Source: Basidiobolus meristosporus CBS 931.73
Taxonomy: Eukaryota; Fungi; Basidiobolomycota
Assembly (NCBI GenBank): GCA_002104905.1
Contig: MCFE01000036.1
Coordinates: forward strand, 141,584 to 205,583
DNA: 64,000 nucleotides
Reading direction: 5' to 3'
This document shows positions 6,767-56,918 of this stretch, piece after piece. The position numbers and the translations under genes were made by a program. Under the pieces are notes generated by a model. It was not told the DNA's origin. It ran no database searches and was given only the letters and a program-made list of their open reading frames with translations. Positions within the stretch are counted from its first letter, which is position 1; each line of letters begins with the position of its first letter.

Positions 6767-7522
6767 TTAGCGTGTGGTATACCCACCATTGGCAAAGGTG
6801 GTCTGGCCAGTAATCCACCACCCCTCCGTAGCAAGGAACTTGATGAGCGGAGCAATGTCTTCGATCTTGGTCAACTCCCCGCTCATGCCATTAGCCTTGT
6901 GATAGGCAACTGCATCAGCACCCTCCATGGGATAGAAGAATGGCGTGTCCATAGGCCCCGGGGCAACATTGGTGACGGAGATTCCTCGACTACCAAACTC
7001 CTTGGCTGCAGCACGAGTGAAGTGCTCCACAGGTGCCTTGGCTCCAGCATAGGTGGAGTAGAGTCCAGTGAATGCGGCAAGGAGAGCTGTCACCACCGTG
7101 TTGATCTTGCCGCCTTGATTCAGTCGCTTCCCTGCCTCCTGAATGAAGAAGTAGGCGGACTTCGAGTTCACGGCAAACATCTCATCGTACTGCTCCTCAC
7201 TGGTGTCCACAATGGGCTTTTTGAGCACTTTGCCAACCGTGTTGATGGTGATATCCACGCCACCATACTTCTCGACGGCTGTATCGAATAGACGGGTCAC
7301 TTCCGAGACCTTGGTTAGATCGCCTTGGAAGCCGATGGCATCTCCTCCACTGTTCTTGATCGCTTCAATGGTCTTCTCGGCATCTTGCTGGGCACTCTGA
7401 CTGTGGTAGTGGACAACCACCTTCGCCCCCTGCGCCCCGAAATCTCTGCTGACCAGGCCACCTAGATTTTTAGCACCTCCAGTTACAACGATCACCTTGT
7501 TCCTGAGCGAGGAGCGAGACAT
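6767..7522 (-). CDS. Classical short-chain dehydrogenase/reductase, copy 1 (251 aa, intronless)
   Basis: TGGAKNLG Rossmann motif and YAGAK catalytic YxxxK. The start is placed at ATG 7522 by alignment with copy 2. Confidence 0.93.
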   Translation of the reverse strand: MSRSSLRNKVIVVTGGAKNLGGLVSRDFGAQGAKVVVHYHSQSAQQDAEKTIEAIKNSGGDAIGFQGDLTKVSEVTRLFDTAVEKYGGVDITINTVGKVLKKPIVDTSEEQYDEMFAVNSKSAYFFIQEAGKRLNQGGKINTVVTALLAAFTGLYSTYAGAKAPVEHFTRAAAKEFGSRGISVTNVAPGPMDTPFFYPMEGADAVAYHKANGMSGELTKIEDIAPLIKFLATEGWWITGQTTFANGGYTTR

Positions 7523-7934
7523 TCTTGATATACGGGCCTCACACTCAAGCAAATGCGCTTATACATCTTTCGGCGGGTATGTCGCTAGCCTTTGAAGCCT
7601 CCCTTCCGCAGTTCACCCACCTACAGGGAACCGACCTTCTCCCAGGGCATTTTCCATCCTTTCAGTTTGCTCGGGTGATTGGTGTGCGGCCTGTTGTCAT
7701 ATCGCTCCATTCGGGGTCTTCGCTGCCTGAACCAGATTCCAAGGTTTGCTGGACAAGGCTAGGGAAGTTTCTGCATGACCATTTGCCGCCACCGGCCTGA
7801 GCTAAATCCACTTCTGGTCGATAAGGACTCGCTGGTCCAAAACGTCGGGAGAAGCGTGGGTCGGTGCGTAATACAATGCGTCACGACTGAAGATCCTGAT
7901 ACATTGATCGGTTCATGCTGAGAATCCCGCCGCA

Positions 7935-8825
7935 ATGAACCATCCGTCACTGGAAACTTGGATTCACTCGTCTCTGTCAACGTATGCTCTGCTCGCCATG
8001 CCAGCTGCACGTGACCTTGCGGACGGGTATCGTTTTCTCTACCGTATATATGATGCGCCGGATGGCCTTGTCGTGAATACAAAGGGGCAAATCTCGCCGA
8101 AGGAGGCAGCTTGTATGGCAAAGTGTATGTCAGCCATGGGTACACTGCGTTTGCCAATACGCCTCCCATGGAATCCCCAAAGTGGGCGGAAATATGGAAC
8201 CCAAGCATTCCACCGTTTGATCCATTTAAGCTCACCTACCAAGCCAAGCCGTACAGCGGATTTCATCGGGATTTGGAGTGCCAAGGACAAGCGGCGACAT
8301 TGAAACACGTCGAATTACACCTACTTGGTTGGCCATAGGATTTAGGTCGTTTCATCCAGAAGACGGAGTGGTTCGGTTTACTCAAGCCAAATTACGATCC
8401 TCGACTCGTGGAAGATCTGGATTAGCAGGAGATCGGGATCATCTGGCTAATATATGTCACTCAATCCTGGCAAAAAGAACCACCACAATCAATCTCCAAC
8501 TATCTACAGGAAAGAACGATTTATTGAACAACCGATGTGGAGCCAGTGATGGGCCACTTGGGTAACATATCAATGGGCTCCTCCATGAATTTCCTATCCG
8601 TGAACGAAAGAGTCCGTACACAGCATGACCCATTCCCAATCAAGTAGCCAGAGCACCGAAGCCTGGAAAGATCTGACCACACAGGGGTCATACGAAGGCA
8701 TCGAAAACTGGTGGCACAGCCGAACACAGGTGATGCCGAGGTGCGACACTGGAATTGGATTCGCCAAGAACGATCCTAATCGGTATCCCCGCAAGCGCGT
8801 TCTCAGGAAACCAGCAACCGTATGA
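7935..8825 (+). pseudogene. Unidentified fragmented coding-like region divergent from SDR copy 1
   Basis: Protein-like stretches lie in different frames (WAEIWNPSIPPFDPFKLTYQAKPYSGF; DLGRFIQKTEWFGLLKPNYDPRLVEDL; YEGIENWWHSRTQVMPRC). I could not join them by clear introns and recognised no family. Confidence 0.25.
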
Positions 8826-8979
8826 CGGAAGTTAAATCTCCCTCCATAAGAGTGGTGTGGCAGAGGAGGGCACAGTCTCAAACGAGCCCGGTTTCTTTCG
8901 GATTTGGCTAAATTGGCCGCTCACTCGATCAGCTGCGTAATATAAATCTCCCAGTGGGCCACTTCGCCGTGAGCCTGAC

Positions 8980-10284
8980 ATGTTGAAGACCTCGCTAGGA
9001 CAACTGATAGTTCTATCCCTCACCTTTTGCTTCATCCAGGGCACCTACAACATCTACTATGGCTCGGGGACCCTGGGTGGCATAAACGTCTCCACCTCAG
9101 TTGGAAACAACGTGGCCCTGTACTCGACGTTCTCGATCGTCTCCGTCTTCGCCGGCAGTGCTCATAACGGCCTGGGGCCCCGGGTGTGCATCATCATCGG
9201 CGGGATCACCTACATGATCTACGTAGCCAGTCTTTGGTATTATCTTTATACGGGAAACACCTTCCTCTCCATTATCGGAGCGTCCATGGTGGGCTTTGGT
9301 GCCTCCCTGTCTTGGGGCGCTGCAAACACGATCCTTATGGCCTATCCTATGGAAAACCAGAAGGGCCGATTCTTCGGGATCTTCTGGATTCTCTTCAACC
9401 TTGGCTCTCTAATCGGGGGATTCCTCCCACTCATGCAGGTTGAGCTGAACTATGTTACCATTGGGTTTCTGTGCCTGATGCTGGTTGGAGTGTCTGTCGC
9501 GTGGCTTCTGGTCCCGCCGGCTCTGGTGATTCGAGAGAACTCGACGTACGTTTCGGATCCATGCAGGTTCAACCTCTTCGATGAGCTCTACCAGATCTAC
9601 AACTCCTTCCGGTGCCAGTACCTGCTGTTGCTGTTCCCCCTCTTCTTCTACTCGAACTTTTTCTACGCATACCGACTTGGCCATTTGATCCACGATAGCT
9701 TCACCGATCGCACGCACATGTTTAACACCGTTACCTACTGGGCGGCCCAGATGCTTGGCGCGTTTACCTTCGGCCAGTTCTTGGACTGCTCACTGATCAC
9801 CAGATCGAAGAGAGGGAATGTAGGCTTGATATTCGTTGGGGCCTTTAGCTCGCTGACTTGGATAGGCTGTTTGGTTTTAGAGCTAAATCGATCCCACGGC
9901 CTGACCGCGCCAACGGACCTGGTCGACAGTAACTACAGCTCAGCTCTAGTGCTGATGTTGCTGTGCGGGTTTGCCGATGCTATAGTCCAAAGCTACTGCT
10001 GTTGGATCCTCGGGGCCAAAACTAACAATGCAAGTATCTTGTCAAGATACGGGGGAATCTACAAGGCAGTGCAGAGCGCCGGCGCCGCAACAGCCTGGTT
10101 CATCTCCACCACCAGCATCCCCTCCTGGCTGGTTATCGTGATCAACTTCTCCCTGTTCTGCATTGCTCTGCTTCTCGCCTACTTCGTCGCGAGAGGCATT
10201 ACCAACACAAACTACCACCTGGTCCTCGGGTCACATGACGAGGACCTGATAGCCCCCATGAACACCCGGAAGTCACGCAACTAA
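8980..10284 (+). CDS. UNC-93-like MFS membrane protein (434 aa, intronless)
   Basis: About 12 hydrophobic segments. ALYSTFSIVSVFAGSAHNGLGPR, MAYPMENQKGRFFGIFW and YGGIYKAVQSAGAATAW fit the fungal UNC-93-like family. Confidence 0.8.
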   Translation: MLKTSLGQLIVLSLTFCFIQGTYNIYYGSGTLGGINVSTSVGNNVALYSTFSIVSVFAGSAHNGLGPRVCIIIGGITYMIYVASLWYYLYTGNTFLSIIGASMVGFGASLSWGAANTILMAYPMENQKGRFFGIFWILFNLGSLIGGFLPLMQVELNYVTIGFLCLMLVGVSVAWLLVPPALVIRENSTYVSDPCRFNLFDELYQIYNSFRCQYLLLLFPLFFYSNFFYAYRLGHLIHDSFTDRTHMFNTVTYWAAQMLGAFTFGQFLDCSLITRSKRGNVGLIFVGAFSSLTWIGCLVLELNRSHGLTAPTDLVDSNYSSALVLMLLCGFADAIVQSYCCWILGAKTNNASILSRYGGIYKAVQSAGAATAWFISTTSIPSWLVIVINFSLFCIALLLAYFVARGITNTNYHLVLGSHDEDLIAPMNTRKSRN

Positions 10285-10617
10285 AGCCGAAACCGCCTGG
10301 TCACACTTGATCCCATTCGGATTTCAACCACTGTGGATCAGCGCAGCCCAGACAGCCGACGGAGATTCCATTACTCATACTGCTGAACCCAGTACACCGA
10401 ACCATTGAGTATACGTTTGGCCGTGTGGGTGAAAATTAAGCCCACACGGCGAATCCCTTGATCCTGCCCCAATTCACATGTACCTCCAAGAGAATCGAAG
10501 CAAACCACACTGAAGTAATATAAAGTTTATAATGTTCCCGCACAGATATATCTCTTTCTTTTTCTCTCTCGCATGAAGTGTACACTACCATAGCATCATT
10601 CTAAGAACGAGGTGGAG

Positions 10618-11021
10618 TCAATACTCCTCGTCCTCGTCTTCGTCATAGCGCTTACGAGGCCGGCGGTCAACGGGCGAGCCGGAGGCCTCACGTTCGTTGG
10701 TCTCTTGGTTAATCTTGTCACAAGCGTCAATCCACTCGCTGTAAACGTCAATGGGCTCACTCAGGTAGTTGATCATGCACTGGAAGCTTGCCGAGCAGAT
10801 ACGGCAGCTAAGGTGGCCTATCTTACTATCCTTCTCACTACATGGAAACAATATGGAGGCTTGGTCAACGAAAAGGTGGAAACTTGTATATAGTGGGTGG
10901 GCTTCTCTTACAGTCGACAGGATATAGACTTCTCGTGGTTGCAAAACAGGCAGTTGAACGTGGTGTCCAGTACGACTTTTCTCTTCGCCGGGGCTTTACT
11001 GCTGGATTTACGCTTCCCCAT
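10618..11021 (-). CDS. ELF1: Transcription elongation factor Elf1/ELOF1 (2 exons; intron 10838-10911)
   Basis: The spliced product [51 protein letters not shown]...[15 protein letters not shown] has the Elf1 zinc ribbon. Confidence 0.95.
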
Positions 11022-11279
11022 TTCCTATTGAATGTAAGTCACAACGGGCTAGACTAACCACCGGTGGACTAAAACCCAATCGGCCACCCCCTGTCTTTTT
11101 ATACGCCTGGCCTGCATTGTCAAAGGCATATTCTTCAAAAGTAGGTTATTTGTTGTATTTAATGGGCCCGAGCCACGTGACAGGGAGGGAAAATCCTGCC
11201 CCCCTCCCCACTTATTCGTTGGATCAATGAAAGATCGAATGGCAGCTTGATTCAGCCCCGTCTACCTGACCGAAACTCG

Positions 11280-13777
11280 ATGAATAATAGAAAGCAGACA
11301 AGACGTCTGGATCCAGTGAAGGAAAACCAGATCAGAGAGGACGAGCTCCTCGCGCTGGAGTTGCAGGTTTGAGGTGGATCAACCACCGAGCTTTAGTTGA
11401 AAACCGGGGAAGTGGACTCAGACGTAACCGCAAGTTTTCTCCCCACCTCACTGTAGAAACAATTCGATCTCGAAGAGCGTGAATATTTGGCGAGAACCGG
11501 AGGCCCAACCATTCCCCCCTCCGTCTATTCTGAAAAAAACTCCCCCTCGACCTCACGAGCCCCTCTCGGCTCAGAGGCCAACTCCTCCACCTTATTTAGT
11601 CTTCTCCAGGTCCAGGATGCACCTGCTGAACAAAATAGAGGGCGGATTAGTTTAGAGCAGTTACTGCAGGTGTTTGGTTGTTTTTGAGCTGGTATTAACT
11701 CCAAACTTCAAGAGGCTAACTCTGTTGTTTCAAAGGGAGGTTTGAAGGCCAGTGTGCAGTTTAATTACCTGGTAGACGTTGACTGGTTCATGTCAAAACT
11801 ACCGGCAAACAACCGGGAGATCCCAATTCTTTTTGTCCACGGGATGTCGGGAGCCAATTCAGGCGTTTTAATGGTAGTTGGCTTGTTACGAAAGTTTGGC
11901 CGGGCGGTTTTTCTAAGCGAAGGGTTCCCTAATCTGATTATTTCGCACCCGCTTAGGAACAAGTGCGGCGTTATAGCAACCTCAAAACACACCTACCTCA
12001 ATTGCCACCCTATGGAACCCACCACAGTAAGGTTGTGAACAACCCTTGATTTCTCTGGAAACCAGCTACTCAACCAGAGCCCAGGTCATGATCCTGTTTT
12101 ATGAGGAGCATGTGAGAATCGTGATCCACACCGCGAACTTGGTTCCTCAGGATTGGAGGTAGGTGGATTCCCGCTAGGAGGAGTTGATTCGAGTGATTGA
12201 TCTTGCTCGCCTTCGCTTTAGAAACAAAACCCAGGCGGCCTACGTGAGGTAAACGAACCGAAGCATCATACAAACTTGGCCGGACCCACCATAACCTCTC
12301 AACTAGCCCGCTGCTACAGAAGAAAACGGACATCGGACGATCCACCGTGTTCGAGCGAGATTTTTTGAGCTATCTGGCTGCTTATGGGAATATCCTGAAC
12401 AGCACTCGCGACAAACTCTCGAAATACGACTTTTCCCCGTGCAAGGTTAGCAACTCCGGAGTGCGTCAGGCGGACGAATGTTCTAATGGTTTGTGGGGGG
12501 CGTTGCTAGGGCACCATCATCGGCTCCGTTCCCGGACGACACGCCGGCACCGAGCTGCATAAATGGGGCCATATGAGGGTCCGAGAAATCTTATCCACGA
12601 TGGCACTGGGAAAGCAATTTCAATCGAGCAGCCTGATACTTCAAGTAGGTCCATTCCGCACCCCACCCCACCATCGGGACAACGCAGGAGTAAGCTGAAC
12701 CCCGACAGTTTTCGAGCATTGGCTCGCTAGGGAAAACGCCAGATTGGCTGACCAAAGAACTCGGCGAGAGCTTCTCCAGATACCAGCCGGATGACCAGCC
12801 TAATCAGAGCAAAAGAAGAAAGATGGAAGAGCGTAGCATCCGAGCTGATCAATTCACCCCGCCGGACATTAAATTGATTTTCCCTACTGTCGAGGAAGTC
12901 AGGAACAGGTAGGGACTGGCGGGACTGGCGGAAGAGGTGGACACTGGCTTACTTCTCCATTCCATAGTTTCGAAGGATATGCCGCTGGAGGGTCCATTCC
13001 TTATGACCTCAAGAATTTCCTGAACCAGCAGCACTATTTGCAGAAGCACATGTGCCATTGGAAGGCTAACGACCAAGGCTTGAACCGGGCAATGCCACAT
13101 ATCAAGGTGGGTAGTCCTTGACCAGCCTCTCTGACGAATCGGAATCCCACATCTCCCAATCCTTTAGACGTATGCTCGAGTCACGGACAGCGGAGAGGAG
13201 CTTGCGTGGTGTATGGTCACCTCCTCAAATCTTTCGAAAGCGGCTTGGTAGTTGACGTGGCCTGATATCACAATGGCATTGCTTCCTAATCCCGATCCAT
13301 CCACTTCCAGGGGAGCCCTCGAAAAGAAATCCACGGCCAACCCTCAGCTCCACATTCGCTCTTTCGAGCTGGGAGTGCTGTTTTCCCCGCAGAGTGTTGA
13401 GGTTTCTAGCCACCCCAAATGAATCAGTACGGCATAGGTTCTTACGTTCCATTCTAGCCCGAGAGTGGTGCCGAGATCTGCTTAACCCCCAAAAAGCGCC
13501 TCATGGACAAAGCCTCGGGAATCCAGCGATACTGGTGTCCTTTGCCGTACGATTTGCCGCCTTCGCCATACAGCACATCAGGTATGTTCGGCCACCTTGC
13601 ACCAAGCTACGGAAACCATGCTCACACGGTTTACATGGGGATCATCAACACAGATAAGCCTTGGGTACGTGAGTTCATAGCAGCAGCACACATGGCGCAT
13701 TAGCTAATCATGCCTTGTAGGTGTGGAACGACAAATATCCAGAAAGCGATTTATTTGGACGAACCTGGCCGCATTAG
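11280..13777 (+). CDS. TDP1: Tyrosyl-DNA phosphodiesterase 1 (multi-exon)
   Basis: Exon pieces QFNYLVDVDW, GTHHSK-VMILFYEEHVRIVIHTANL, FPTVEEVRN, AMPHIK, VTSSNLSKAAW, IRSFELGVL and PYDLPPSPY, including both HxK motifs. The ends are inferred from splice signals. Confidence 0.92.
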
Positions 13778-14306
13778 TATCTATCTCGTACAGCAATCCC
13801 GAACAGCAGACAGTACATCTCGCCTAGGATACACGGAAATAAACAGTTGAAATGGGATTTGTTTGGCAATTAGCAGTTGAAATGGGATTTGTTTGGCATC
13901 CAATGCAGATTGTATAAATTGACCAATGTTACAAAAGCCAATGGTATAATCAAACTCATCAATCATCGTACATTGGAGTTGGTCAGGAGAACAGTTATGC
14001 CAGTGAGTTCCCAGGATTCCCAGAATGCCCTCAATTCCCTTAATTCCCTTAATTATGATTGAACAGCAGGGGTATTCACGCCTAAATTCTAGCTTGCGAT
14101 GGCCGCTGGGCGAGATTGGCTAGACGCGACCGATTGTAATCCAGAGTGGTGATAGGAACAATTTATCCTAGGGGTGAGCGCAACCTATACTGCAACTCCT
14201 CCCCCAATGGTTTATTACTCATACCCATATTAATCATCACCGCACCACTCTAAATCCTTCTTTTTCCTTCCTAAGCCGTCCTTCCCCCGTTTACCGTACA
14301 TTCCCG

Positions 14307-15097
<791 letters not shown>

Positions 15098-15357
15098 GGC
15101 GCCGCCTGGCCATCTTTGTCCGATCGATCTTCCACATCGCATCCCCCCTTTTTGCTTGGACTTCCACCGCTACTGTTTAAATACTTTCTAATTTATTTCT
15201 TAATTCTCACTGGCAATTCTAATAAACGTCCGTCAACTGGAGACTGCGGGGGTATTCGGGCGCTGGTCCCAACGTATTTATTCCTATCCACATTCAATCA
15301 TGCATTCTAAGCCAACGAAATTTATTAACAGGGCCATTCCGGTCTTGAATTCGAAAA

Positions 15358-15840
15358 CTAGATCAAGGTCTCGTAAGCGATGGGGTAGATGGTGGTGGGA
15401 GCGTTGTCCTTGGTGGAGACGTGGCGAGCGTCACGGGGTTGGGCGGGAAGACGCTTGAGATGAATGGTTTGGCCGGAGGCCTTGGCGTCCTTCTTCTTTT
15501 GGGCGTTTTCCTTGACACGACGCAAGAAATCGTCACGGCACTTGGAGTGCTTGATGTGCTCCACACGGATGTTCACACGCTTCTCCATGTAGCGGTTACC
15601 GACACGCTTGTTCACGATGACTCCGACGGAGGTCTTGGTGACGTTGTAGACGATACCGGTTCTGCCGTGGTAGAACTTGTGGGGCATGCCCTTCTGGATG
15701 GAGGCGTTGGCCTTGATGTCGACAATGTCTCCGACCTTGTAGGTCTTCAAGTAGGTGGACAGCTTGACGGGGCCATGTTCACGGAATTTCTGAGAGAACA
15801 GGTGGCGGGTACGAGCACGATAACCGAAGGAGTGGGGCAT
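15358..15840 (-). CDS. RPL21: 60S ribosomal protein eL21
   Basis: MPHSFGYRARTRHLFSQKFR...GMPHKFYHGRTG; uninterrupted 160-aa ORF with strong codon bias. Confidence 0.98.
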   Translation of the reverse strand: MPHSFGYRARTRHLFSQKFREHGPVKLSTYLKTYKVGDIVDIKANASIQKGMPHKFYHGRTGIVYNVTKTSVGVIVNKRVGNRYMEKRVNIRVEHIKHSKCRDDFLRRVKENAQKKKDAKASGQTIHLKRLPAQPRDARHVSTKDNAPTTIYPIAYETLI

Positions 15841-16201
15841 TGTTCACTAAAATAGAGACAAGAACTGGTTGAGTGAATGTGCCACCAAGTCTACACTACG
15901 CTAACTACCCCGCCCAACCACAGCTGATAAGTACCTGACACTGGTTTCTACCTTTAAAGCGCGTGAAGGAGAAAAGGAGGGATCCCGATTTTGCTATGTC
16001 CATAGTTTTGTCGATTCTTTGGGCCGAAAAAAAATTCAAGATCTCACAGGGGTCCTTCCCGCGCAGATGATCCACTGATTATTGGGCAGGACAAGGGTGC
16101 TCCAAGGTTTTTTTTTCAAACAAGTCACCGTCACTTAAAAATGTGGACTTTGGTTTATGATGCCGCCTTTTCCCTTGGTCGGACTTAAGTAACGGCACAT
16201 C

Positions 16202-16988
16202 ATGGCTCCCCCAAGAAACTGTATTCAGCATGAACAGGAATAGGATGATTTCAAGCGGTTGCGGTTGGAAATTCCCTTTTATTTTTTTTTTCGTTTTTTC
16301 CTCACAGCGACCTGTTCTTATGAAGAGATACTTAGCATATTCTCTGGGCATGAACGAATAAGACAGTCTAGCTAAACGTTACCGGAAAGTTCCTGCTCGG
16401 TATGAGGCACTGGACTTTACCGAATTGTTCTATTTTCTAGGCTCCAAGACCTACAAGGTTCCCAGACGTCCTTTCGAGAAGGAACGTATTGACCAAGAGT
16501 TGAAGATCATTGGTGAGTACGGTCTCCGTAACAAGCGCGAGATTTGGAGAATCGGATACACCTTGTCCAACATTCGTCGTGCCGCTCGTGAGCTCCTCAC
16601 TTTGGATCCCAAGGACACCCGTCGTCTCTTCGAAGGTAACGCCCTTATCCGTCGTCTCATCCGCATCGGTGTCTTGGACGAGTCCAAGGCCAAGCTCGAT
16701 TACGTCTTGGGTTTGAAGGTCGAAGATTTCTTGGAACGTCGTCTTCAAACCCAAGTCTTCAAGCTTGGTTTGGCCAAATCCATCCACCACGCCCGTGTCC
16801 TCATCAAGCAAAGACACATCCGTGTTGGTAAGCAAGTCGTCGACATTCCCTCCTTCGTTGTCCGTTTGGAATCCCAGAAGCACATCGACTTCGCTTTGAC
16901 CTCTCCTTATGGTGGTGGTCGCCCTGGCCGCGTCAAGAGAAAGAGAATGGCTTCCGCCGGTGGTGACGCCGAGGAAGATGAGGAATAA
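16202..16988 (+). CDS. RPS9: 40S ribosomal protein uS4/S9 (exon 1 16202-16220, intron 16221-16440)
   Basis: The spliced product reads [40 protein letters not shown]...[16 protein letters not shown]. Confidence 0.97.
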
Positions 16989-17448
16989 CTTCAGCAACCT
17001 TCTGTTCTATTTCACGAACCCTCTGTCTCAATAAAAGACATGATGAATTAATCTTTTAATCAACATTCTTGTGGCTGCCTAATTTGTTGACTAAAGTTTG
17101 TTAATCGGCCCATCGTTGCCGGATCATGAGGAATGTTTACATATGCAGCCGCATCCAATGGGCATGATTGCCCTCGGTATCTCATGGAAGAGAATTGCCG
17201 AATCCCATTGATCACCACAGCCATGATTGGGCATGGGAATGCAGAAAGGCTCTTTTTAATTCCCTGGAGCCGATTTGATTAGTCCATAGCACCAGGCAAT
17301 ATATGATAGAAATCTCCTTACACATGCCCATTTTCCCACCGATCGCTCCCCCATTTTTTTCAATTCATAATAAACCTGCATTCAACGGACTGGCATTTCC
17401 CAAAGCTCCCTTCTCTGTCTCCTTTCCTGCCGTCATCAAACTCACAGT

Positions 17449-17649
17449 ATGTCCTCCCTGACCGAAAAGCTCTCCCTGAAGTACTACCAGTACGAACTAG
17501 TCACCGCCCTTTACATGTTGGAGCCATGGGAGAAGGCCTGCTTCAACACTATCGTCGTTTTGGGCTTCTTGCTTACCCTCTACACCACCGTCATCTACGT
17601 TCCTGAGTACGCCTCCTCCGCTCTTACCAAGATCTCCGCATACTATTAA
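17449..17649 (+). CDS. Serine palmitoyltransferase small subunit (ssSPT/SPTSS family, 66 aa)
   Basis: YYQYELVTALYMLEPWEKACFN followed by a TM segment matches the SPTSSA/B family signature (Y..LVT.LYMLEPWE). Confidence 0.88.
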   Translation: MSSLTEKLSLKYYQYELVTALYMLEPWEKACFNTIVVLGFLLTLYTTVIYVPEYASSALTKISAYY

Positions 17650-17922
17650 AAAGTATGTCTGAAGCCGAACAACCGTATAGCAAGCTAGAACCCCGGAAGT
17701 TTACTACGCTAGTTTATTTCATAATACCTTCGTTAATAGAACCTTGACCCGTATCAACCTCTATCTTTATGATATTTGTACTTTAATACTTTCCTTTGTA
17801 GTAAACTAACTCAACTCATAATTAAATATTTGGTGAACCACAGTAGTCAACCGGTTCTTTTCCCCTTTTCTTCTCTAGAGCGGGGGCCATGTTCAAGTCG
17901 AGAGAGTTCCTCGCCAGTCCGT

Positions 17923-47000: not shown

Positions 47001-48807
47001 GCAGATTATTAGTGGTAGTCGTATCCCTGATGGTTTTGTTGATCGTTCTCTACCACATTTCTTGATCAATTCGAAGACCCCTCCCGCCAAGGGTTTCGTG
47101 AGAAACAGTTTCTACAGTGGTCTTACACCTACCGAGTTCTTCTTCCACGCTGTGTCTGGTCGTGAAGGTCTTGTCGATACTGCCGTCAAAACTGCCGAGA
47201 CTGGTTACATGCAAAGAAGACTGATGAAGGCACTCGAGGATTTGACGACCCATTATGACCTCTCTGTTCGTAGCTCTTCTGGTGGTGTTGTTCAATTCTG
47301 TTATGGTGACGATGGTCTGGACCCCGCTACATTGGAGGGAGACGGACAACCTGTGGAATTCAGTCGTAACTTGATGCACGTTAGAGGAGTTACTCCCGTT
47401 GGAAAGGATCATCCATTGCTTCCCTATCAAATCACCAAGATTACCCGAGAGGAGCTCAAGAAGCCAGCATTCACAAAGGTCTGCAACAGCGCCTTCCTTG
47501 AATCAGTCGAAACCTTTGTTCGTGAGCATGTTGTGGAGCAACTAGCGGAGATTAGAGGGAAGAATGGAATGAACGAGGCTCTGGACGAGCCTAAAGTCCC
47601 CAATGCCAACATCGACAAGAAGATTAGCCCTGCCGTTAGAAAAATGATTAACAACAAGCTAACCATCACCGAGCCTCAACTCAAGGCATTCCTCAACATA
47701 TGTTTGTCCAAGTATATGAAGGCTAAGATCGAACCTGGATCAGCTGTTGGTGCCCTCGGTGCACAGAGTATTGGTGAGCCGGGTACACAGATGACACTCA
47801 AAACTTTCCATTTTGCTGGTGTAGCTAGTATGAACGTCACTCTTGGTGTGCCTCGTATCAAGGAAATCATTAACGCGGCCAAGGTGATCAGTACACCCAT
47901 CATCACCAGTAAGCTTGTCTGTGATGACAATATCCAGTCCGCTAGAATCGTGAAAGGTCGAATCGAGAAGACATTGTTGGGTGACATTGCAGAGTTCATT
48001 GAAGAAGTCTACAGACCTGAAGAATGCTACATCGGGATCAAGATTGATCTTGATGCCATCCAGAAACTCCAACTGGAAACCGATCTGTATCAGATTGCCA
48101 ACGCAATTGTTGCGGCACCTAAACTCAAGATCACCACTAGCAACGTTCAAGTACATAAGCCAGACCGTGTCCGCGTTTATGTACCTCAGAAGGAAGCATC
48201 TACGTTGTATTATAACCTTCAAGCTTTGAAGCGAGCTTTGCCTCAGGTTATTATCAAGGGTATCCCTTCGGTTAACCGTGCGGTTATTAGCGAGGTTACC
48301 GGTGGTAAGGTTCAACTTCTGGTTGAGGGCTACGGATTACGCGAGGTCATGACGACCGAAGGTATCGTAGGGACCGAGACGACTTCCAACCATGTCATGG
48401 AGATCCAGAAGGTGTTGGGTATCGAGGCTGCTAGAAATACCATCTGTCATGAGATCCAATACACCATGAGCAAGCACGGTATGACCATCGATCCTCGTCA
48501 CGTGATGCTTCTTGGAGATATCATGACATACAAGGGCGAAGTGCTGGGCATCACCCGGTTCGGTATTGCCAAGATGAAGGACAGTGTTCTAATGTTGGCT
48601 TCATTCGAGAAGACCACCGACCATCTGTTCGATGCTGCGATGTATGCTAAACGGGATTCCATCGAGGGCGTGAGTGAATGTATCATCATGGGTATCCCCA
48701 TGCCCATCGGTACTGGATTGTTCAAGCTTATTCACAAATCCGAGCAAGAAACGTTGCCCAAGCCACGCTCCTTACTCTTCGACAACCCAGAGTTCCACGT
48801 TAATTAA
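44095..48807 (+). CDS. RPC1: RNA polymerase III largest subunit C160 (multi-exon)
   Basis: MKEHVV..KRI; GTSDK..CETCG..CVGHYG; [25 protein letters not shown]; [21 protein letters not shown]; [15 protein letters not shown]; [12 protein letters not shown]. There is no CTD heptad repeat. Confidence 0.97.
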
Positions 48808-49018
48808 AACTATCCCCTTTCTATAATCTCCACCCGACACCCTCCCCCCTCACTCATACTCATTCGGATGACTTCTATTCATGCATCATCTCGTATACTT
48901 CTCTAGAATTGTATTGATCAAATGTTAATCCTGATTTATTATCAGCAAATAAATGGGAAAAAATCTGTAGAAATAGAGACACGGTGTGCTGGCAGCGTTT
49001 ATTTATGAGCTTTACGAA

Positions 49019-51900
49019 TTAATTAGACGGCTTCGGAAGGATGTTCTGATTGATGGTTTTAAGCAATTCCTCCATTTGCCGAAGCTGGGCCCCAAGCCGG
49101 TGGCTATGTTCGGGGTCATGCTCTTGCGAGCCTACTTGCTGCTGGGATTCAGGCACAGCGCTCACAGCATTCACACCGTTCACAGCGTTGTTAGCGACAA
49201 GTTTGGTTAACCGGGTTTCGGTGGATTGGATCTGCTGCGACAGATTACGGATCTGGTACCAACCGATTGCGTTCGAGACGCAGAGTACAATTAGCACGAG
49301 TGCAACCAGCGTTGTGGAGGAAGTAAGGTTCAGTTTGTTTAGGAATTGCTTCAGGGCCGATGTCTCAGCTGGTGGCGGGGCCACCGGCTCGATGGTTGGC
49401 TCGGTGTTACGTCTACTCTTGATGCGCACCTGTTTCTTGGCTTTCTTACTACTCTTGGGGGCTGGCTTTTCCGAGGCGACGGTATCGGATGAGTTGTCCA
49501 CGACATGACGTACAATAAAGTTTTCGGTGTCCTTGGCAACAATCACACTTCCATCGTGCGTACTGCGCTCGATTTGACCTAGAAATTCGACTGCTGTTCA
49601 GTAGAGCCTCCTAGAAATCACACTAATACAAGAACATACTCTTGAACCACGAAGTCTTGTGCCATGTTATGGCAGCAGTTATAACCATGCGGGTCTTCCC
49701 ATTACCAGCATGCATAAAGCAGGTGCGTGTCTGGGGATTGAAATAGGTGCCGTTGGGAACATCTGGGGTAGATATGGTAGCCACTACAGAGGTGTATCTA
49801 ACAGGTGTCAATCTAGGGCCGCCCCATTAACCGTTTGAAGGCTGTGATACATACTTGTTGAAATCCTTATGATCAATCTCTTCGATAACTGTACATTTCG
49901 TTTGTTTTGGTCCTAGTTTCGAATGTTAGAGTCGACCTCCTATTCCATACCGAGAAGAAACCATACCAAAGGGCACATTGATGGGCATTGTATAGATCAG
50001 CGTTCTCTTGCCTTCGACCCAAGGTGTAACCTCGACATCTTCAAAACCAGTTATTGCGATGCTATGGGTAAGTGCTAAACGTGTTGGGTCAAGTACCTTT
50101 GTTTTTGTTCTCGATGAGAAATTCTTTCATTCCCTGGCTACCTTCACCATAAAGAATATCGTAGACCCTGTTTAAAGGCGCTGGGATGACGGTGTCTATA
50201 AGGAGGTTTTTGAAATGGTTGCTGTTGCAGCCACAGACAGTTGCTTTCGCATTATTCAAGGAGGGAGGCACATCATTGCGGAGAGTAGCATTCGAGTCTC
50301 TCGAAAGCGTCTGCGGGGCTGTGGAATTCAGTTGGGATGGATGAGCAACACTGTTGTCAGACCCAGTGGACTGTTCGGCGGGGTTGCTGTCGAAGCTGCC
50401 TTCCTCGGAAAGCTCGTCCGAATTATACCCGTCTGAATCGCTTCCTGAATCTGCCCGAGGGCCCACGCTATATGGGGATTCCAAGTTGGTCTCTGAATCA
50501 CAATAGGCAAGATTCTCGACCAGAGCGGGATGATTCTTCCTCCATAAATACACCAAGCAGTTAAAGGCAGCTTCTCTGGCCAAGAATGACCCAAAGAGGT
50601 ACTAAACCGGTGATATCAATACAGAAACTCTTATGCATCCAAGTTGCCTAGAAAATACCTTGCTTTGTAGCGTTGAAATGAGGATCGCGTTTGGAACAAA
50701 GAAAGCCATATTCCTTCGCTCAATGGAAACAACCTCTTTGAATTTGATAACGATCTGGCCATTCGAGGATGTTGGGTATTAGTGAGCCGATCTCGCCCGC
50801 AGCATAGCAGGACACTTACGTTGGTTACAAATCCAAAGATGTTGGCATAGAAGCAGATAAAATCTTCGGTAATGTACATTCGTCCATGGACTAGAATGTC
50901 TTTTTGTATAGCACAGGTATAATCTTTCGAGTGTTATCGTTCATTGTTAGTGGGTGCTGCTTATTCGCCAAGTTCAATCTGCTTACCTTCTATTAGGACA
51001 GCACTGGGTGGGATATCCTTGAACAACTGATGAAAGTCTGTGTTTTTCTTTCTGTTGGCTGTGGTCTTGCTGGAGCCTTCAGAATCATGTGCATCTTCCT
51101 TGATGTTGAAAGTGTTACTTCGAGGTCTGGCACGTCTGAGCAGACTTGAAGATCTGCCTATATTTCTTCGGTTAGGTGCGCTCTTGGATCTACATAGAGT
51201 TATGTCGAAATCGGACGAGGAATCGTCCAAGTCGGAATGGTGTTCTTGGTTGTCGGGTGGATTGTTGTTAAGCTGCTCCAGATGCTCCAAAGTTGATGTT
51301 GGAGATCCAGCAGTAACGGGGGAAGCAACAGACAGATCTGTAGCTGATGTGGCCATGGCTGGTTGGTTTATTCGAGATATATACGGTGGGGAGTTTTTTT
51401 GCGGCTCTTCGAAGGTGTTGGGGTTAACGCTCGAAGGGAGAAGTTTTGTCGGAGTGTTTGCTTGCTTGGCTGTGCTTATCAAGTTCAAAGTGGAGGCAGC
51501 ACCTGCAGCGGCGTTTAAGAAGGATGAGAAGAGATCTTTGGTTGGGCTATTGAGGGACACTAGTGTGAGAAGCGATTGCGGGACACTTAGATCACTCGGG
51601 ATCGAGTAATTTTTCGACGTAATATGTATAGGGATTGGCGCAGAAGGCGGTAGGGAATTCTTTGAGAGAGTATTTGGTATTTTAGGAGTTCGGGGGGACT
51701 CAGGTGGTTCGGTTTGAGTTTGTGAAGTGCCGGAATTCGACCTAGTGCATTCTTTAGTATTTGTCTTAACAGGGGTGTGTGGAGGGGAATATATAAGGCG
51801 TTTTTCCATATTACTCAATGGCGGGTTAGGGGGTAACCGGAAAGTGACTAATACGGTAAAGACACTCACTTACGTTTCGCAAGTTTGGCGGGTAGATCCT
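49019..51900 (-). CDS. LAM/Ltc-family sterol-transfer protein (GRAM + VASt/StARkin + C-terminal TM; multi-exon, 5' end uncertain)
   Basis: GRAM: TDFHQLFKDIP...YITEDFICFYANIFGF. VASt start: VIPAPLNRVYDILYG. C-terminal TM: LVALVLIVLCVSNAIGW. A splice donor at 51873 indicates further upstream exons. Confidence 0.85.
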
Positions 51901-52620
51901 GAGAGAACAGGGAAAATAGTCAAGTCACATTATTATACATGATTATTGAGGTTGAGTCAGATGAAAATATTACCTGATTGAATTGCTACCAAATACGCAT
52001 TATGATGATGACACGGAACGTGTGATGATTATATATATCTTGTGAAGTGTTACCTTGATCTGCAGTGGGTGCTGGCTGTGGGCGCTGGCTGTGGGTGCTG
52101 GCAGAACTGTTCCGACCAGATGACAAATATTCCCTGGCGAAGTGCTATATTGAGTGATATATTGGTACCATCTAATTCCGATAATTCCGCGGCTCTGATC
52201 TCCGTTGGTAGCGTCGGAAGCGTACGGTTGAAAGTGCCATAATTAGTGGAGCACTCTACCCCGCATCAATGGTGGTGTGTATTTGATGCAAACCGCAACC
52301 GACTGGGATGGTTTTTTTTGTTTTCGCATGCGATAGGCTTTATTCAGTCCCGAGGCTCCATTCCTATATTACCAATTTCTGATTTCAATCCCGAGGTTCC
52401 TTCCCAATATTGACAGTTACTGATGTCATTTTCTTAATCATACGTGTCTTAATGTTGGTTTAAAGTTTAATTCTGTTTAGTAAGCTAACTGCTTAATCAC
52501 AAACAATCCGATTCTGAATATATGCCTAGTATTTGATTCAAGTTTAATTGTGCTTGATGGTTCATCAACACAGAAGATAAAGTTGTTCGGTCGTGAAAAT
52601 TTCCAAGATACTTTGCTCTC

Positions 52621-55154
52621 ATGTCAGAAGCTGCACCCAGCATAGTGGTTGCAGAGGGTGTTACCCCTCTGGAGGTGGTATCAGATTCAAAACCCAGTCC
52701 AGCCTTACGTACTCCAAAAAAACGTGGTAGGCGTCCTAAGGATGGCGGAAGCGGAAAAAAACCTGCCTACAAATATGTCAAGAAGGATAGATCTATGGAC
52801 TGGAATCATGCAACATATGTACCACAGAGCGATAAACCTATATATAAGCTTAGACAGGAAGAAGCCAAACCTTGCTCGTATAGTAAGGTCAAGTCAAAAT
52901 TCCAGCAGTATCACTTGATAGAGGAAAGGTAATAATCGATGATTGGATAGTATACTACTTTGTCCAACGAAGACCCCTGGTATTAACTCATTTCTCAGTC
53001 TTGCCAAAAACTATCTTCCCGACATAAACGTAACTTCCCAGGTCAGCTTCGAGCATCACTCTACGGAAGGCACAATATGCTCTCGACCGTTAACATCGCA
53101 CATGTTACGTACGTGCCTCACGTTGATTCCAGATGTCTACTCAATTATTTATTTTTCTGGATTCTATTTCTTGAATAGCAAATCGTCGAGGCTTTCTTCT
53201 GAATAGTGGCGGCTCAGTTTGGGGGTTGGATTGGTGTCCTGAAATTCCAAGTGGAGGTACACTAGAAATCAGAGCGGCAATGATACACGATCGCTGAGCA
53301 GCCTTAAAATTTTAGAGAACCAATTCCTTGCAGTTGCTGGATACAAGGGGACGACCGGCGAGCATCACATCATTGGTGAACGAGAGACCAACAGTACTGG
53401 CTATATAGAAATTTGGAATCTGGGGCCTATAGCGAATGATGTAATGTATGAATATCATATCAAACTACAACCATTACCATGAATTAGACTCTCTAACAGC
53501 AATACCACGATGACAGTGACGAGGAAACAGAGTTCCGACCTTGGGTAGATATATGCTTTGTACACCTTAACGGTTGTGTATGGGATCTAAAATGGTGTCC
53601 TTATGGGGCGTACGACACTTCGGTATGTAGTTTAAACTTCGAGCAATGTTCGGGATTCGTTGCTGACCTCGGATGAGATAGAAAGAGTGGAATGGAGAAG
53701 ATGAAATACCAAAGATTGGAATCATTGCTGCTTGTTTTGGAGATGGCACTTTGAAAATTTTTAGCGTTCCAAACCCGGATGTGCTTAGGAAAAAGCTAGA
53801 GAAGCAAGGCCATTCATATGCCCCCAACAAGACAATATATGGTAGGTTTTACCACGCTAAGCTAAGCTTGTGTATTGCGACGAATAATTTCTCACCTACT
53901 GTAGTGCAGCTTGATGAAGTGTTGTTTGAGGCTCAATTGCCCGACACATCCCTTTGGAATCTGAGTTGGGGCGGGCACAAATGGCTATCTACTGGATGTA
54001 CCAATGGTATAAGCGAGTGTATGCGTGTGGCAAAGACTACAAGAAATGAAACCTGAAATATTTTCTTTTAGGAAATATAGCTGTGTGGGATGCGGAGAAT
54101 GCTATTATGCGAAAGAACTCGGACTTCCCGCTATTACCAGCCGATGGTGTTGTATTTTTCCGTAGCAGGCTGATAGACAACGTTCCAACTAATTAGGTTG
54201 TACATCAACATACAGACTATATGGTGCACTACTTGCCCGCTCACGATTCATGTGTTAGAAGAGTCTCGTGGAGAAGCGTCGAAAATACTGATTATATTGT
54301 AAGTTGCGGTCACGATGGCCGCTTGCTAGTTTGTGATCTTAGGGATCCCTACACTGATATGCTTACGCACCGTATCCGAGGTAAGATCATTTCACCTATG
54401 CGCATAATCCAGGAGTAAAGCCAACGTATGCATCTAGCCTTTTTGATGGCCGCATCCTGGGTGAAATTCGAATCTTCGTACAGTATTGTATTTACGGATG
54501 CAGAAAATGGTGTGCGCTTAACAGAGAAGGATGATATTAAAAAATCCGTGGGAATTATCACCCATAAAGGATGTATATGGGTATGTATTCTGACGGCGAC
54601 TATGTACTAGTGTTAGGAATAAGTTACTCATGTGTTGTAGCACGTAGATTGTTCCTCTTTACACCCTTTCGTTGCTAGTGGAGCATCCGATGGATCGGTT
54701 AGATCAACGAATTTGCGTCACTTGAGAGCTAGAAATCAGGCAAGTGTTTTTACCGGGGTAACCGAAGTAATGTGGGTCTAATCCCCTTCCAGATGACACT
54801 CTACACCTTGAAGAAAGACTCTGAGAAGAACGAGTTCATTTACGATGATAATGTCGTGTTTGAGGTAATCCGAATCTTCCGCACCTCGATTGCCTGCCTG
54901 ATATTGACTCCTATTCCACTGTAGCCGTTAGTTGCTCACAACCACACACCAGACAATTTATTCACAATGTTTTTCGCGCCAGAAGTGGCCATTCAACGGG
55001 TGCGTCTCAAGTACTTGTTTCGAGCATGGATGCTTTATTGACTTTTCGAATCTTTTGTTCCTAGGTTTCGTGGTGTCCCAACCCACAATCTGCGGCGTGG
55101 ATAGCCTCTGGAGGAACAGCGGGACTGGTTCGTGTCGAATCAGCAAGTAGGTAA
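52621..55154 (+). CDS. TFC6: TFIIIC subunit Tfc6/Sfc6/GTF3C2 (AT-hook + WD40; multi-exon)
   Basis: N-terminal AT-hook KKRGRRPK; WD pieces WLSTGCTNG, AHDSCVRRVSW, SCGHDGRL; C-terminal AAWIASGGTAGLVRVE as in GTF3C2/Sfc6. Confidence 0.8.
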
Positions 55155-56162
55155 ACGGTGGCTTATTCGGGCCTCAATAGCACGTTTCCGACTGGTTTGA
55201 TACAAAAATAGTCAAAAAATGAATAAAATCCAAATAATGAGATCAAACTATCAGAGCTTTGGTTTTGAACACTAGTGCTGATCTGAACCTTACACTAAAT
55301 AGGTTTCGTAATGACGATAGCCATATGCAGTCTGCTTCTAGATGACGGCCGAAGGGTACCACAAAATAACATCCGCACTGCAAGGATTAATCATTGGCAG
55401 CGCATAGGTCTGTGTCGTGACCAAATCATCCTAGCTGAGTTCGAATCGAGCAGTTATTCTTCGCCACCAGTCTATATCGAATGGTTGCTTGAATTCAACC
55501 CAATCCCTTGCTCTACTGCGAGCCGTTTCTATGCCGTGTTATCCTTCTTGACATTAGTAATACGCCTTGAATCTAATGCCATCTGTGATCCGATCATCTG
55601 TTATGACTGGAACCAATGGATAGCTTTCCCAGTCTGTCAATTCGATCATCTGTGCCAGTTGGTTTTAGCGTCATCATTAACAACACAACCACAATAGCAA
55701 AGTTTCAATGCGGAGTTTGGTGGATCAATTTTGAGTGAAGACTGGCCAACAGATTGCTCGGGATCCGCAGTTCTGCTGGATATTTTCCCATACCTTACTC
55801 CTACACCACTGTAGGATATATGGCCAATCCGACATCCATCTACATGTACCACAACTCATATTTACGGAGTAACGTGATTGCTGGCCATCTTCATGAACTT
55901 GATTCGCGGCCACCACAAACAATGGTATTGAGAAAGTTCTGGCGATGAGCTATGAAAAGCTACAATTCATCTCGACTGCCACTCATTTGCCAATCCTTGA
56001 CCATTTTGGCGTCACTAGATTAAACCAACCATGGGGACACGGTGACGAAGGCTAGCTGAACTACGGACAGGTGATGCCAAAGCCTATTGACACATCAACT
56101 ACTGGGTATATAAATGGATTTTCTGGCGCAAAATCCATACATCAATTACTAAGCAACCGATT

Positions 56163-56918
56163 ATGTCTCGCAGCTCACTCAAGAACAAGGTGGTCATTGT
56201 AACTGGAGGTGCTAAAAATCTAGGTGGCCTGGTCAGCAGAGATTTCGGGGCGCAGGGGGCGAAGGTGGTTGTCCACTACCACAGTCAGAGTGCCCAGCAA
56301 GATGCCGAGAAGACCATTGAAGCGATCAAGAACAGTGGAGGAGATGCCATCGGCTTCCAAGGCGATCTAACCAAGGTCTCGGAAGTGACCCGTCTATTCG
56401 ATACAGCCGTCGAGAAGTATGGTGGCGTGGATATCGCCATCAACACGGTTGGCAAAGTGCTCAAAAAGCCCATTGTGGACACCAGTGAGGAGGAGTACGA
56501 TGAGATGTTTGCCGTGAACTCGAAGTCCGCCTACTTCTTCATTCAGGAGGCAGGGAAGCGACTGAATCAAGGCGGCAAGATCATCACGGTGGTGACAGCC
56601 CTCCTTGCCGCATTCACTGGACTCTACTCCACCTATGCTGGAGCCAAAGCACCTGTGGAGCACTTCACTCGTGCTGCAGCCAAGGAGTTTGGTAGTCGAG
56701 GAATCTCCGTCACCAATGTTGCCCCGGGGCCTATGGACACGCCATTCTTTTATCCCATGGAGGGTGCTGATGCAGTTGCCTATCACAAGGCTAATGGCAT
56801 GAACGGGGAGTTGACCAAGATCGAAGACATTGCTCCGCTCATCAAGTTTCTTGCTACGGAGGGGTGGTGGATTACTGGCCAGACCATCTTTGCCAATGGT
56901 GGGTATACCACGCGCTAA
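56163..56918 (+). CDS. Classical short-chain dehydrogenase/reductase, copy 2 (251 aa, intronless)
   Basis: Same motifs as copy 1. A TATA-like TATATAAA lies near 56108 and AATAAA near 56960. Confidence 0.95.
   Translation: MSRSSLKNKVVIVTGGAKNLGGLVSRDFGAQGAKVVVHYHSQSAQQDAEKTIEAIKNSGGDAIGFQGDLTKVSEVTRLFDTAVEKYGGVDIAINTVGKVLKKPIVDTSEEEYDEMFAVNSKSAYFFIQEAGKRLNQGGKIITVVTALLAAFTGLYSTYAGAKAPVEHFTRAAAKEFGSRGISVTNVAPGPMDTPFFYPMEGADAVAYHKANGMNGELTKIEDIAPLIKFLATEGWWITGQTIFANGGYTTR

Follow-up and report, generated by a model that had tools for sequence, protein, structure and literature searches.

Near-identical, inverted dehydrogenase genes bounding a 48.6-kb gene block in Basidiobolus meristosporus: probable old paralogues homogenised by ectopic gene conversion

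Interlocus gene conversion and concerted evolution occur in the duplicated genes of yeast and in the palindrome arms of sex chromosomes. Inverted duplications are also found at the breakpoints of chromosomal inversions, where they result from staggered breaks, as in Drosophila and Anopheles. In the methylotrophic yeasts Ogataea polymorpha and Komagataella phaffii, mating type is switched by flip-flop inversion (PMC6692504; bioRxiv 10.1101/2025.09.09.675088). In the fungus considered here, Basidiobolus meristosporus CBS 931.73, approximately 5% of the genes are candidates for horizontal transfer (HGT) from bacteria, and 61% of these candidates are without introns (Tabima et al. 2020, PMC7466969).

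The window, meaning the whole stretch of DNA that was analysed, is the terminal 64 kb of contig MCFE01000036.1 of this strain. It contains two inverted arms (6761-7522 and 56163-56924) of 762 nt each, which are 97.9% identical and enclose 48,640 nt. Each arm consists of a 251-codon open reading frame for a short-chain dehydrogenase/reductase (SDR), at 6767-7522 on the minus strand and at 56163-56918 on the plus strand, so that both are directed outward. This agrees with the initial annotation, which had described a near-identical, outward-pointing SDR pair on opposite strands, one at each end of a 48.6-kb block. The features of the window are as follows.

1-6266, no strand: left retrotransposon array
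6761-7522, minus strand: left arm, SDR-L, intronless (coding sequence 6767-7522) plus 6 common nt past the stop codon
7487-7522, minus strand: 5' edge of SDR-L, putatively unconverted (coding nt 1-36), with 6 differences from SDR-R
7548-7622, minus strand: promoter region of SDR-L (approximately -100 to -25), containing a TATA-like motif
7523-56162, no strand: block between the arms, 48,640 nt, with ordinary, mostly intron-bearing genes
8980-10284, plus strand: UNC-93/MFS transporter gene, the leftmost gene of the island
52621-55154, plus strand: WD40 gene (555-aa model), the rightmost gene of the island
56049-56124, plus strand: matching promoter stretch of SDR-R
56163-56924, plus strand: right arm, SDR-R (coding sequence 56163-56918) plus 6 common nt past the stop codon
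57164-64000, no strand: right retrotransposon array

When the two copies are aligned, identity runs from the first base of the ATG to 6 nt past the stop codon, with unalignable flanks on both sides, and the coding sequences differ at 16 of 756 nt. The initial annotation had allowed that many dispersed SDR copies could make the pairing a matter of chance. The protein cluster at 90% identity has SDR-L and SDR-R as its only members, and tblastn across the 64-kb window detected no third copy, so the pairing is not a chance one among many copies. The layout resembles that of the Ogataea and Komagataella flip-flop loci in that inverted repeats bracket a block of tens of kilobases, between which recombination would invert the block without loss, and in that repeat-rich chromatin adjoins a repeat. 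It differs from them in that the genes beside the SDR repeats encode an UNC-93/MFS transporter and a WD40 protein and are not mating-type genes, and in that the repeats are a metabolic enzyme gene whose likeness conversion would account for. In addition, transposon arrays lie beside both SDR repeats, whereas in the yeasts silencing chromatin, of a centromere or telomere, adjoins one repeat only.

Pfam matches and gene calls show that the interior consists of ordinary genes, in keeping with its earlier description as an island of housekeeping genes between the SDRs. The island holds roughly 25 genes, among them those for UNC-93/MFS, Elf1, Tdp1, Arf, RPL21, RPS9, a PRP4-type WD40 protein, a RhoGAP-LIM protein, ATP synthase alpha, an SMP/PH protein, condensin Cnd3, RPO31, a GRAM/VASt protein and a WD40 protein. 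Annotation of the middle of the island, where the SMP/PH ORF of 655 aa lies, derives from Pfam searches on single ORFs, with RPO31 and others searched as single-exon ORFs.

Unique spacers (6267-6760 and 56925-57163) separate the SDR pair from the retrotransposon arrays, which begin at a distance of about 500 nt on the left and 246 nt on the right, and the same copia family is present at both ends, within the approximately 0.6 kb of each SDR that had been reported for it. The left array contains a degenerate copia element with gag at 5141-5986 (Pfam Retrotran_gag_2) and a 336-bp LTR (TGTTGTAAG...CTTACAACA) at 5858-6193. In the other LTR of this element, a foldback insertion of 735 bp interrupts the sequence at 40-774. 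An LTR fragment is also present at 6190-6266, and copia sequence extends at least 3.2 kb leftward beyond the window. The right array comprises an inverted gypsy solo LTR (57164-58157) with a copia solo LTR nested within it (57322-57657), a second copia LTR in the opposite orientation (58332-58625), and a full Ty3/gypsy chromovirus that runs from 58649 past the contig end, with ORFs at 59396-63879. This gypsy element, which adjoins SDR-R, is apparently intact and carries reverse transcriptase (RT) and integrase ORFs. The left copia LTR at 5858-6193 is 92.9% identical to the nested LTR at 57322-57657 and 81% identical to the LTR at about 58332-58625. The possibility that SDR and LTR had been duplicated together as a larger mirrored unit was considered and rejected, since the LTR in the mirrored orientation (58332-58625) is only 81% like the left one and the sequences that separate SDR from LTR are unrelated on the two sides.

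Both SDR ORFs match Pfam adh_short_C2 and adh_short, with E values of about 1e-35 to 1e-45, among them 1e-45 and 2e-36. Their translations carry TGGAKNLGG, a glycine-rich cofactor motif, and YAGAK (YxxxK), and the nearest solved chains are 5thk (E=1e-100) and 3ksu (E=1e-93). Judged by these motifs and matches, SDR-L and SDR-R are classical short-chain dehydrogenases/reductases. After the pair itself, the nearest relative is the orthologue in the sister species B. ranarum (86% aa), and past this all organism-named matches among the best 120 listed are bacterial (69-76% aa). In a tree that took in the top matches only, with no eukaryote besides Basidiobolus, the Basidiobolus clade stands beside Sphingobacterium sequences. 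With bacterial sequences as its closest kin beyond the genus, the SDR gene is a candidate bacterial transfer; the initial annotation had noted neither this nor the confinement of identity to the coding sequence. A similar SDR cluster from Ascomycota is listed in Atlas. The gene is thus probably bacteria-derived, and the similar Ascomycota SDRs bear on the direction and the uniqueness of such a transfer. It is intronless amid mostly intron-bearing fungal genes, and its context is eukaryotic in both Basidiobolus species. In lacking introns, lying among fungal genes, having bacterial best matches and fitting the composition of its neighbours, the SDR is like the HGT genes of Tabima et al. 2020 (PMC7466969). 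Its GC3 of 0.62-0.63 is inside the range of the neighbouring genes (0.52-0.78), B. ranarum genes being generally lower, and this comparison of GC3 with neighbouring and B. ranarum genes gave no signal of GC-biased conversion in the SDR.

The differences between the two copies are clustered, with 6 of the 16 falling in the first 34 nt (clustering test p=0.0007). Across coding nt 1-36, SDR-L and SDR-R differ at 6 sites and SDR-R and B. ranarum at 4. Across nt 37-756 (720 nt), SDR-L and SDR-R show 10 differences (about 1.4%), and either copy differs from B. ranarum at about 177. Expressed as sites unique to one sequence, the first segment has 6 for SDR-L and 4 for B. ranarum and the rest has 6 and 173, respectively, a contrast (Fisher p=3e-6) in which the boundary was picked post hoc and the 5' segment is just 36 nt long. 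The 5' edge includes a TCC/AGC serine codon switch between SDR-L and SDR-R, which takes two steps and so fits an old divergence of this edge. On these counts, the 5' end of SDR-L appears to be at least as old as the species split, and the remainder is about 1.4% diverged. The paralogues have a dS of 0.035 and a pS versus B. ranarum of 0.76, which is saturated. As synonymous sites have been homogenised too, purifying selection is no explanation for the jump in identity at the limits of the coding sequence.

When polarised by B. ranarum, 12 of the 16 differences are derived in SDR-L, 8 of them nonsynonymous; SDR-R has just 3 derived changes, all of which are synonymous. Outside the 5' edge, the nonsynonymous/synonymous derived changes number 5/1 for SDR-L and 0/3 for SDR-R (Fisher p=0.048). 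The tree joins SDR-L and SDR-R with support of 99/91 and then B. ranarum with 100/98, with a branch of 0 for SDR-R and of 0.034 for SDR-L. By this polarisation, SDR-L is the derived copy, under relaxed constraint, and SDR-R is the conserved copy.

The probable explanation, in our assessment, is that the pair consists of old dispersed paralogues that are alike through ectopic (interlocus) gene conversion. The paralogues would be old copies of a probably bacteria-derived dehydrogenase gene, seated where the gene block meets the retrotransposon arrays. In the latest conversion, SDR-R would have served as the template and overwritten SDR-L from approximately codon 12 up to the point where the coding homology ends, a mechanism and a direction that we infer from the sequence pattern. 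Only the coding sequence would have been similar enough to pair, so that identity would halt at the coding boundaries, and after the conversion SDR-L would have drifted under relaxed constraint. As in known interlocus conversion, identity drops sharply at the limit of homology, synonymous sites are homogenised, the edge of the tract keeps an older divergence, and the tree signal with the outgroup is discordant along the gene. Unlike in known cases, the partners are 48.6 kb apart and not adjacent, the gene itself is a candidate for acquisition from bacteria, and the copies border retrotransposon arrays.

Upstream of the coding sequences, the promoter stretches of SDR-L and SDR-R are about 65% alike and collinear. 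Their local alignment score of 18 was attained in 0 of 300 shuffles and 0 of 940 real-sequence comparisons, a slim margin over the background maximum of 17.5. This weak and collinear likeness suggests an old duplication at the DNA level that took in the promoter.

B. ranarum provides a comparison within the genus. Contigs 488 and 18 of this species match window positions 8890-19265 and 37120-55155 in collinear order, and synteny begins about 90 nt upstream of UNC-93 and stops at the WD40 stop codon. The left junction in B. ranarum is identical in layout, with a copia-family LTR followed by UNC-93 in the same orientation. At the B. ranarum sites orthologous to the two island edges, the SDR is absent, and one close copy sits elsewhere. 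At its right end the island has an evolutionary breakpoint with respect to B. ranarum, in which a subtilase gene comes after WD40 and the genes beyond WD40 occupy positions 1-8000 of contig JASJQH010000018.1. A search with the C-terminal exon of this subtilase against a representative library located no B. meristosporus orthologue; the matches were a B. ranarum paralogue on contig 280 and a remoter B. meristosporus subtilase array on MCFE01000383.1 (58-67%, tblastx). The initial annotation had pointed to gene order in relatives as informative. That order is conserved where the B. ranarum contigs cover the island, and the conservation does not take in the SDRs, neither of which is present at the B. 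ranarum edges.

Several points count against the conversion model. One is that B. ranarum is without an SDR at both sites, as a result of which the old-paralogue view requires that one lineage lost or relocated copies, or that a duplication came after the species split and is yet old. Another is that the 3' limit, just 6 nt past the stop codon, is sharper than expected and lacks a tail of old homology. The marginal promoter likeness, the post hoc boundary of the mosaic contrast and the shortness of the 5' segment stand on the same side.

Among the other readings, we regard as unlikely a recent RNA-mediated copy, in which the RT of a neighbouring LTR element would have reverse-transcribed SDR mRNA, with the resulting cDNA then integrating at the left site or converting it. 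The confinement of identity to the coding region is in line with such a copy, as are the absence of SDR-L in B. ranarum and the position of both SDRs 0.25-0.5 kb from LTR arrays, with the apparently intact gypsy element adjoining SDR-R. However, the repeat contains no poly(A) tract and no UTR, its identity starting at the A of the ATG, and no TE sequence directly abuts SDR-L or SDR-R. The weak similarity of the promoter stretches, which are untranscribed, also argues against an RNA intermediate, and the old-looking 36 nt at the 5' end would be unexpected in a fresh retrocopy. Because the gene is intronless, introns give no help here, and an RNA-templated and a DNA-templated event are indistinguishable in this respect.

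Somewhat less probable again is that the arms are the scar of an inversion, with a single SDR duplicated in inverted orientation by staggered breaks when the 48.6-kb block inverted. As in the Drosophila and Anopheles cases, the inverted duplicates lie exactly at both ends of the segment, and the right end is a breakpoint relative to B. ranarum, as noted for the subtilase after WD40. Unlike in those cases, both limits of the repeat coincide with those of the coding sequence, which is improbable for random staggered breaks, and the mosaic of ages inside the repeat does not fit a single event. A similar promoter stretch is found at both copies, but under this model only one of them would have kept the native promoter. 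In addition, B. ranarum has the same left junction (copia-family LTR, UNC-93 and orientation), and the covered parts of the SDR island reveal no inversion with respect to the sister species. The proposal that the SDRs are the duplicated ends of a past inversion is therefore disfavoured, on account of the repeat bounded by the coding sequence, its mosaic ages and the promoter likeness at both copies.

The mosaic pattern indicates that the SDR copies have recombined, and thus the precondition for a flip of the block is present. This upholds the view of the two copies as recombination partners, one copy appearing to have overwritten most of the other. Under the conversion model, inversion of the block could arise now and then as a neutral by-product, because mitotic or meiotic conversion is sometimes resolved as a crossover. 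There is only a slim chance that the pair mediates recurrent, reversible inversion with both orientations coexisting among B. meristosporus nuclei or strains; if true, an early-diverging fungus would possess a natural flip-flop of large size, with an acquired bacterial gene as the recombination substrate.

We consider very unlikely an active invertible segment, in which the SDR pair drives recurrent and possibly regulated flipping of the block in the manner of the mating-type flip-flop of methylotrophic yeasts. Repeats of 762 bp at 98% identity are adequate substrates that appear to have interacted, and a crossover within the SDR coding sequence would keep all genes intact. Against this, the one CBS 931.73 assembly has a single orientation, the block showed neither mating-type nor regulator genes and its analysis revealed no recombinase gene, the TE arrays on both sides offer no obvious asymmetry to use, and the arrangement at the left junction matches that of B. 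ranarum. The inversion of the island put forward in the initial annotation thus finds one orientation in one assembly, together with covered parts of B. ranarum that are collinear and share the left junction. The accompanying analogy with mating-type switching fails on content, as no HMG, homeodomain or alpha-box domain was detected in the scanned ORFs or called island genes, a survey that small exons may escape. Nor would the predicted exchange of chromatin neighbourhoods be expected, since with TE arrays at both ends a flip would carry no genes from one neighbourhood into a clearly different one. A programmed or regulated switch at the SDR pair has no support, and the locus seems not to represent a new regulatory device.

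Least probable of all is an assembly artefact (a haplotype join or a palindromic read chimera). In its favour, the window stops at a contig end within a repeat, and a misjoin could have occurred in either TE array. Against it, unique sequence of 1.0-1.5 kb ties each SDR to unique island genes, and the 16 differences between the copies are non-randomly distributed. The flanks of the two copies are unrelated, so that these are neither alleles nor a read palindrome.

Read as the product of ectopic conversion, the SDR locus would be a clean example of conversion acting over 48.6 kb between inverted copies of a probably bacterial gene. It would also be a simple test case for large neutral inversions arising from such pairs. 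Ectopic conversion in B. meristosporus would bear on the dating of paralogues, on counts of horizontally transferred genes in the genus, and on how structural polymorphism is judged.

The repeat finder returned two inverted arms of 762 nt, 98% complementary and separated by 48,640 nt, each carrying a short-chain dehydrogenase (SDR) open reading frame. With the left frame (SDR-L) on the minus strand and the right frame (SDR-R) on the plus strand, both genes point outward, and transposable element (TE) arrays lie beyond them.

Features at the two ends of the gene block
5858-6193, left array: 336-bp LTR of a degenerate copia element, termini TGTTGTAAG...CTTACAACA
reaching 6266, left array: LTR fragment
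6761-7522, minus strand: left inverted arm, 251-codon SDR open reading frame (repeat finder)
56163-56924, plus strand: right inverted arm, 251-codon SDR open reading frame (repeat finder)
from 57164, right array: inverted gypsy solo LTR, with a copia solo LTR nested in it
57322-57657, right array: the nested copia solo LTR
58332-58625, right array: further copia LTR
58649-64000, right array: full Ty3/gypsy chromovirus, running off the contig end

The structure described in the initial annotation, a near-identical inverted SDR pair bracketing a gene block with a common copia family outside both copies, is real and was correctly given; copia LTRs of the left and right arrays are 92.9% identical. 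Rather than being two of many dispersed copies, the two SDRs are the sole members of their 90%-identity protein cluster, and a search of the whole 64 kb found no third copy. Pfam adh_short_C2 matched both frames (1e-45 and 2e-43), placing them among the classical short-chain dehydrogenases, with two uncharacterised bacterial enzymes (5thk and 3ksu) as the nearest solved structures. The window runs from position 141,584 of contig MCFE01000036.1 (205,583 bp; assembly GCA_002104905.1) to the end of that contig.

Several further observations concern the TE sequences. The chromovirus retains three long open frames, for gag-protease (660 aa), RT-RNase H (330 aa) and integrase-chromodomain (486 aa). 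Its two LTRs are 97.7% identical over the portion that can be seen, and it may have been recently active. In the left array, the outer copia LTR is interrupted by a 735-bp foldback (MITE-like) element (40-774; arms of about 364 nt at 22-385 and 426-789, 95% complementary), with a duplicated TA (or CTA) on both sides of the insert. Same-family copia elements, matching window 1153-2223 at up to 94.6% identity, adjoin a tandem S8 subtilase array on B. meristosporus contig MCFE01000383.1 (L007, 1596-5711), so the family is dispersed in this genome.

The two SDR copies align from the first base of the start codon to 6 nt past the stop codon, and outside these limits the flanks are unrelated and unalignable; what the loci share is thus the coding sequence and not a chromosome segment. 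Within it, the 16 differences are unevenly placed, with 6 of them inside the opening 34 nt (permutation p=0.0007) and none across a run of 239 nt. The B. ranarum orthologue (76% nt and 86% aa identity) served as outgroup.

Differences within the SDR coding sequence
CDS nt 1-36: SDR-L against SDR-R, 6; SDR-R against B. ranarum, 4
CDS nt 37-756: SDR-L against SDR-R, 10; SDR-R against B. ranarum, 177

Over nt 1-36, SDR-R is nearer to the B. ranarum gene than to its own paralogue, whereas over nt 37-756 the two B. meristosporus copies hardly differ. Site patterns show the same split: nt 1-36 hold 6 sites unique to SDR-L and 4 unique to B. ranarum, nt 37-756 hold 6 and 173 (Fisher p=3e-6 for a boundary picked post hoc). 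Paralogue dS is 0.035 whereas synonymous sites are saturated between species (pS 0.76), so protein-level selection cannot account for the likeness of the two copies. The 5' edge also contains a serine codon switch (TCC/AGC) requiring two steps, which fits an old divergence. Upstream, the two promoters share weak collinear TATA-containing similarity from about -100 to -25, whose score of 18 exceeded 300/300 shuffles and 940/940 real window-sequence comparisons, though the background maximum came close at 17.5. Taken together, the mosaic, dS, codon switch and promoter results fit old paralogues with recent ectopic conversion from SDR-R to SDR-L.

When polarised by B. ranarum, 12 differences are derived in SDR-L (8 nonsynonymous) and 3 in SDR-R (all synonymous). 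Changes assigned to the period after the putative overwriting number five nonsynonymous and one synonymous in SDR-L compared with none and three in SDR-R (p=0.048), suggesting that SDR-L is under relaxed constraint. In agreement, the protein tree joins SDR-L and SDR-R (99/91) and then B. ranarum (100/98), with branch lengths of 0.034 for SDR-L and 0 for SDR-R.

Among the best 120 SDR matches, all organism-named ones after B. ranarum are bacterial (69-76% aa; Betaproteobacteria, Nitrospira, Sphingobacterium, Streptomyces and others), the remainder being unnamed metagenome proteins. In each of two independent assemblies the gene, itself intronless, is surrounded by fungal genes that have introns; its GC3 is like that of its neighbours. 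In both lack of introns and host-like composition it resembles the HGT candidates of Tabima et al. 2020 (PMC7466969), which make up ~5% of CBS 931.73 genes and of which 61% are intronless. In a tree of these matches, built without other eukaryotes, the Basidiobolus clade falls together with sequences from Sphingobacterium, and the protein atlas holds a similar Ascomycota SDR cluster; for these two reasons the SDR is kept as a candidate bacterial transfer.

The window was compared with three contigs from the B. ranarum AG-B5 assembly (GCA_040143965.1). Contig JASJQH010000488.1 starts within a same-family copia LTR (L004, 3-347; 66-67% identical to the window LTRs, same orientation), with UNC-93 beginning ~1.0 kb past it and no SDR between the two. 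The order that follows (UNC-93, Elf1, Tdp1, Arf, RPL21, RPS9, SPT small subunit, Fy-3/UBA) is collinear with window 8890-19265. Contig JASJQH010000018.1 is collinear with 37120-55155, from Cnd3 through RPO31, GRAM/VASt and WD40; a subtilase gene comes after WD40, where neither an SDR nor a TE is present. The two species agree in gene order over the covered parts of the block and in having an LTR followed by UNC-93 at the left junction. The comparison speaks to these interior parts of the block; outside the repeats, the contig ends in a TE on the right, and on the left copia sequence takes up at least 9.5 kb, continuing past the window start. A search for the B. meristosporus orthologue of the post-WD40 subtilase found only paralogues.

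In B. ranarum the sole close SDR is carried by contig JASJQH010007183.1, where its neighbours are a HAMP histidine kinase and a GH18 chitinase and the flanks are not shared. Both SDR copies are lineage-specific at their present sites, or else were lost in B. ranarum, and the gene has moved at least once within the genus. The same 17-kb contig also encodes K7432_006731, distantly paralogous to the UNC-93 of the window (46% identity); this may reflect an old SDR/UNC-93 linkage or mere chance in so large a gene family. The B. ranarum LTR ~1 kb upstream of UNC-93 corresponds in position to the start of the B. meristosporus left array, marking either an ancient TE boundary or a repeated insertion site; the LTR-to-UNC-93 spacers do not align. 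Elsewhere, a NOC4/CBF (ribosome biogenesis) gene stands between alpha/beta-hydrolase and MRPL50 in B. ranarum (L005, 6534-8312), at whose place B. meristosporus has only 265 nt (42480-42745), and NOC4 sequence is absent from the entire window. The Tdp1 (tyrosyl-DNA phosphodiesterase) gene is modelled at 318 aa in B. meristosporus (11790-13251) and at 536 aa in B. ranarum (L004, 4286-6800), although the DNA aligns across the full span, and the shorter model is probably truncated.

The SDR pair is adequate as a recombination substrate. Conversion between the copies would mean that they have paired, and because conversion is sometimes resolved as crossover, it is plausible that the block inverts now and then. 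Such an event would be close to neutral, since crossover within the coding sequence swaps only near-identical 3' halves. The proposal that the copies are duplicated ends of a past inversion is disfavoured by the coding-only limits of the repeat, the mosaic of ages within it and the similar promoter stretch kept by both copies. A programmed switch, which had been likened to the mating-type flip-flop of methylotrophic yeasts, is improbable: scanned frames and called genes revealed no mating-type-like or regulatory gene at the repeats or in the block, TE arrays at both ends leave no evident asymmetry, and the left junction is arranged alike in the sister species. An assembly artefact is unlikely because unique sequence ties each copy to unique genes and the flanks are unrelated.

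The probable explanation, in our judgement, is that SDR-L and SDR-R are old, conversion-homogenised paralogues of a probably acquired SDR gene at borders of TE arrays and genes. The coding core of the left copy would have been recently overwritten by ectopic gene conversion with the right copy as template, in a tract that would have ended short of the left copy's 5' edge.
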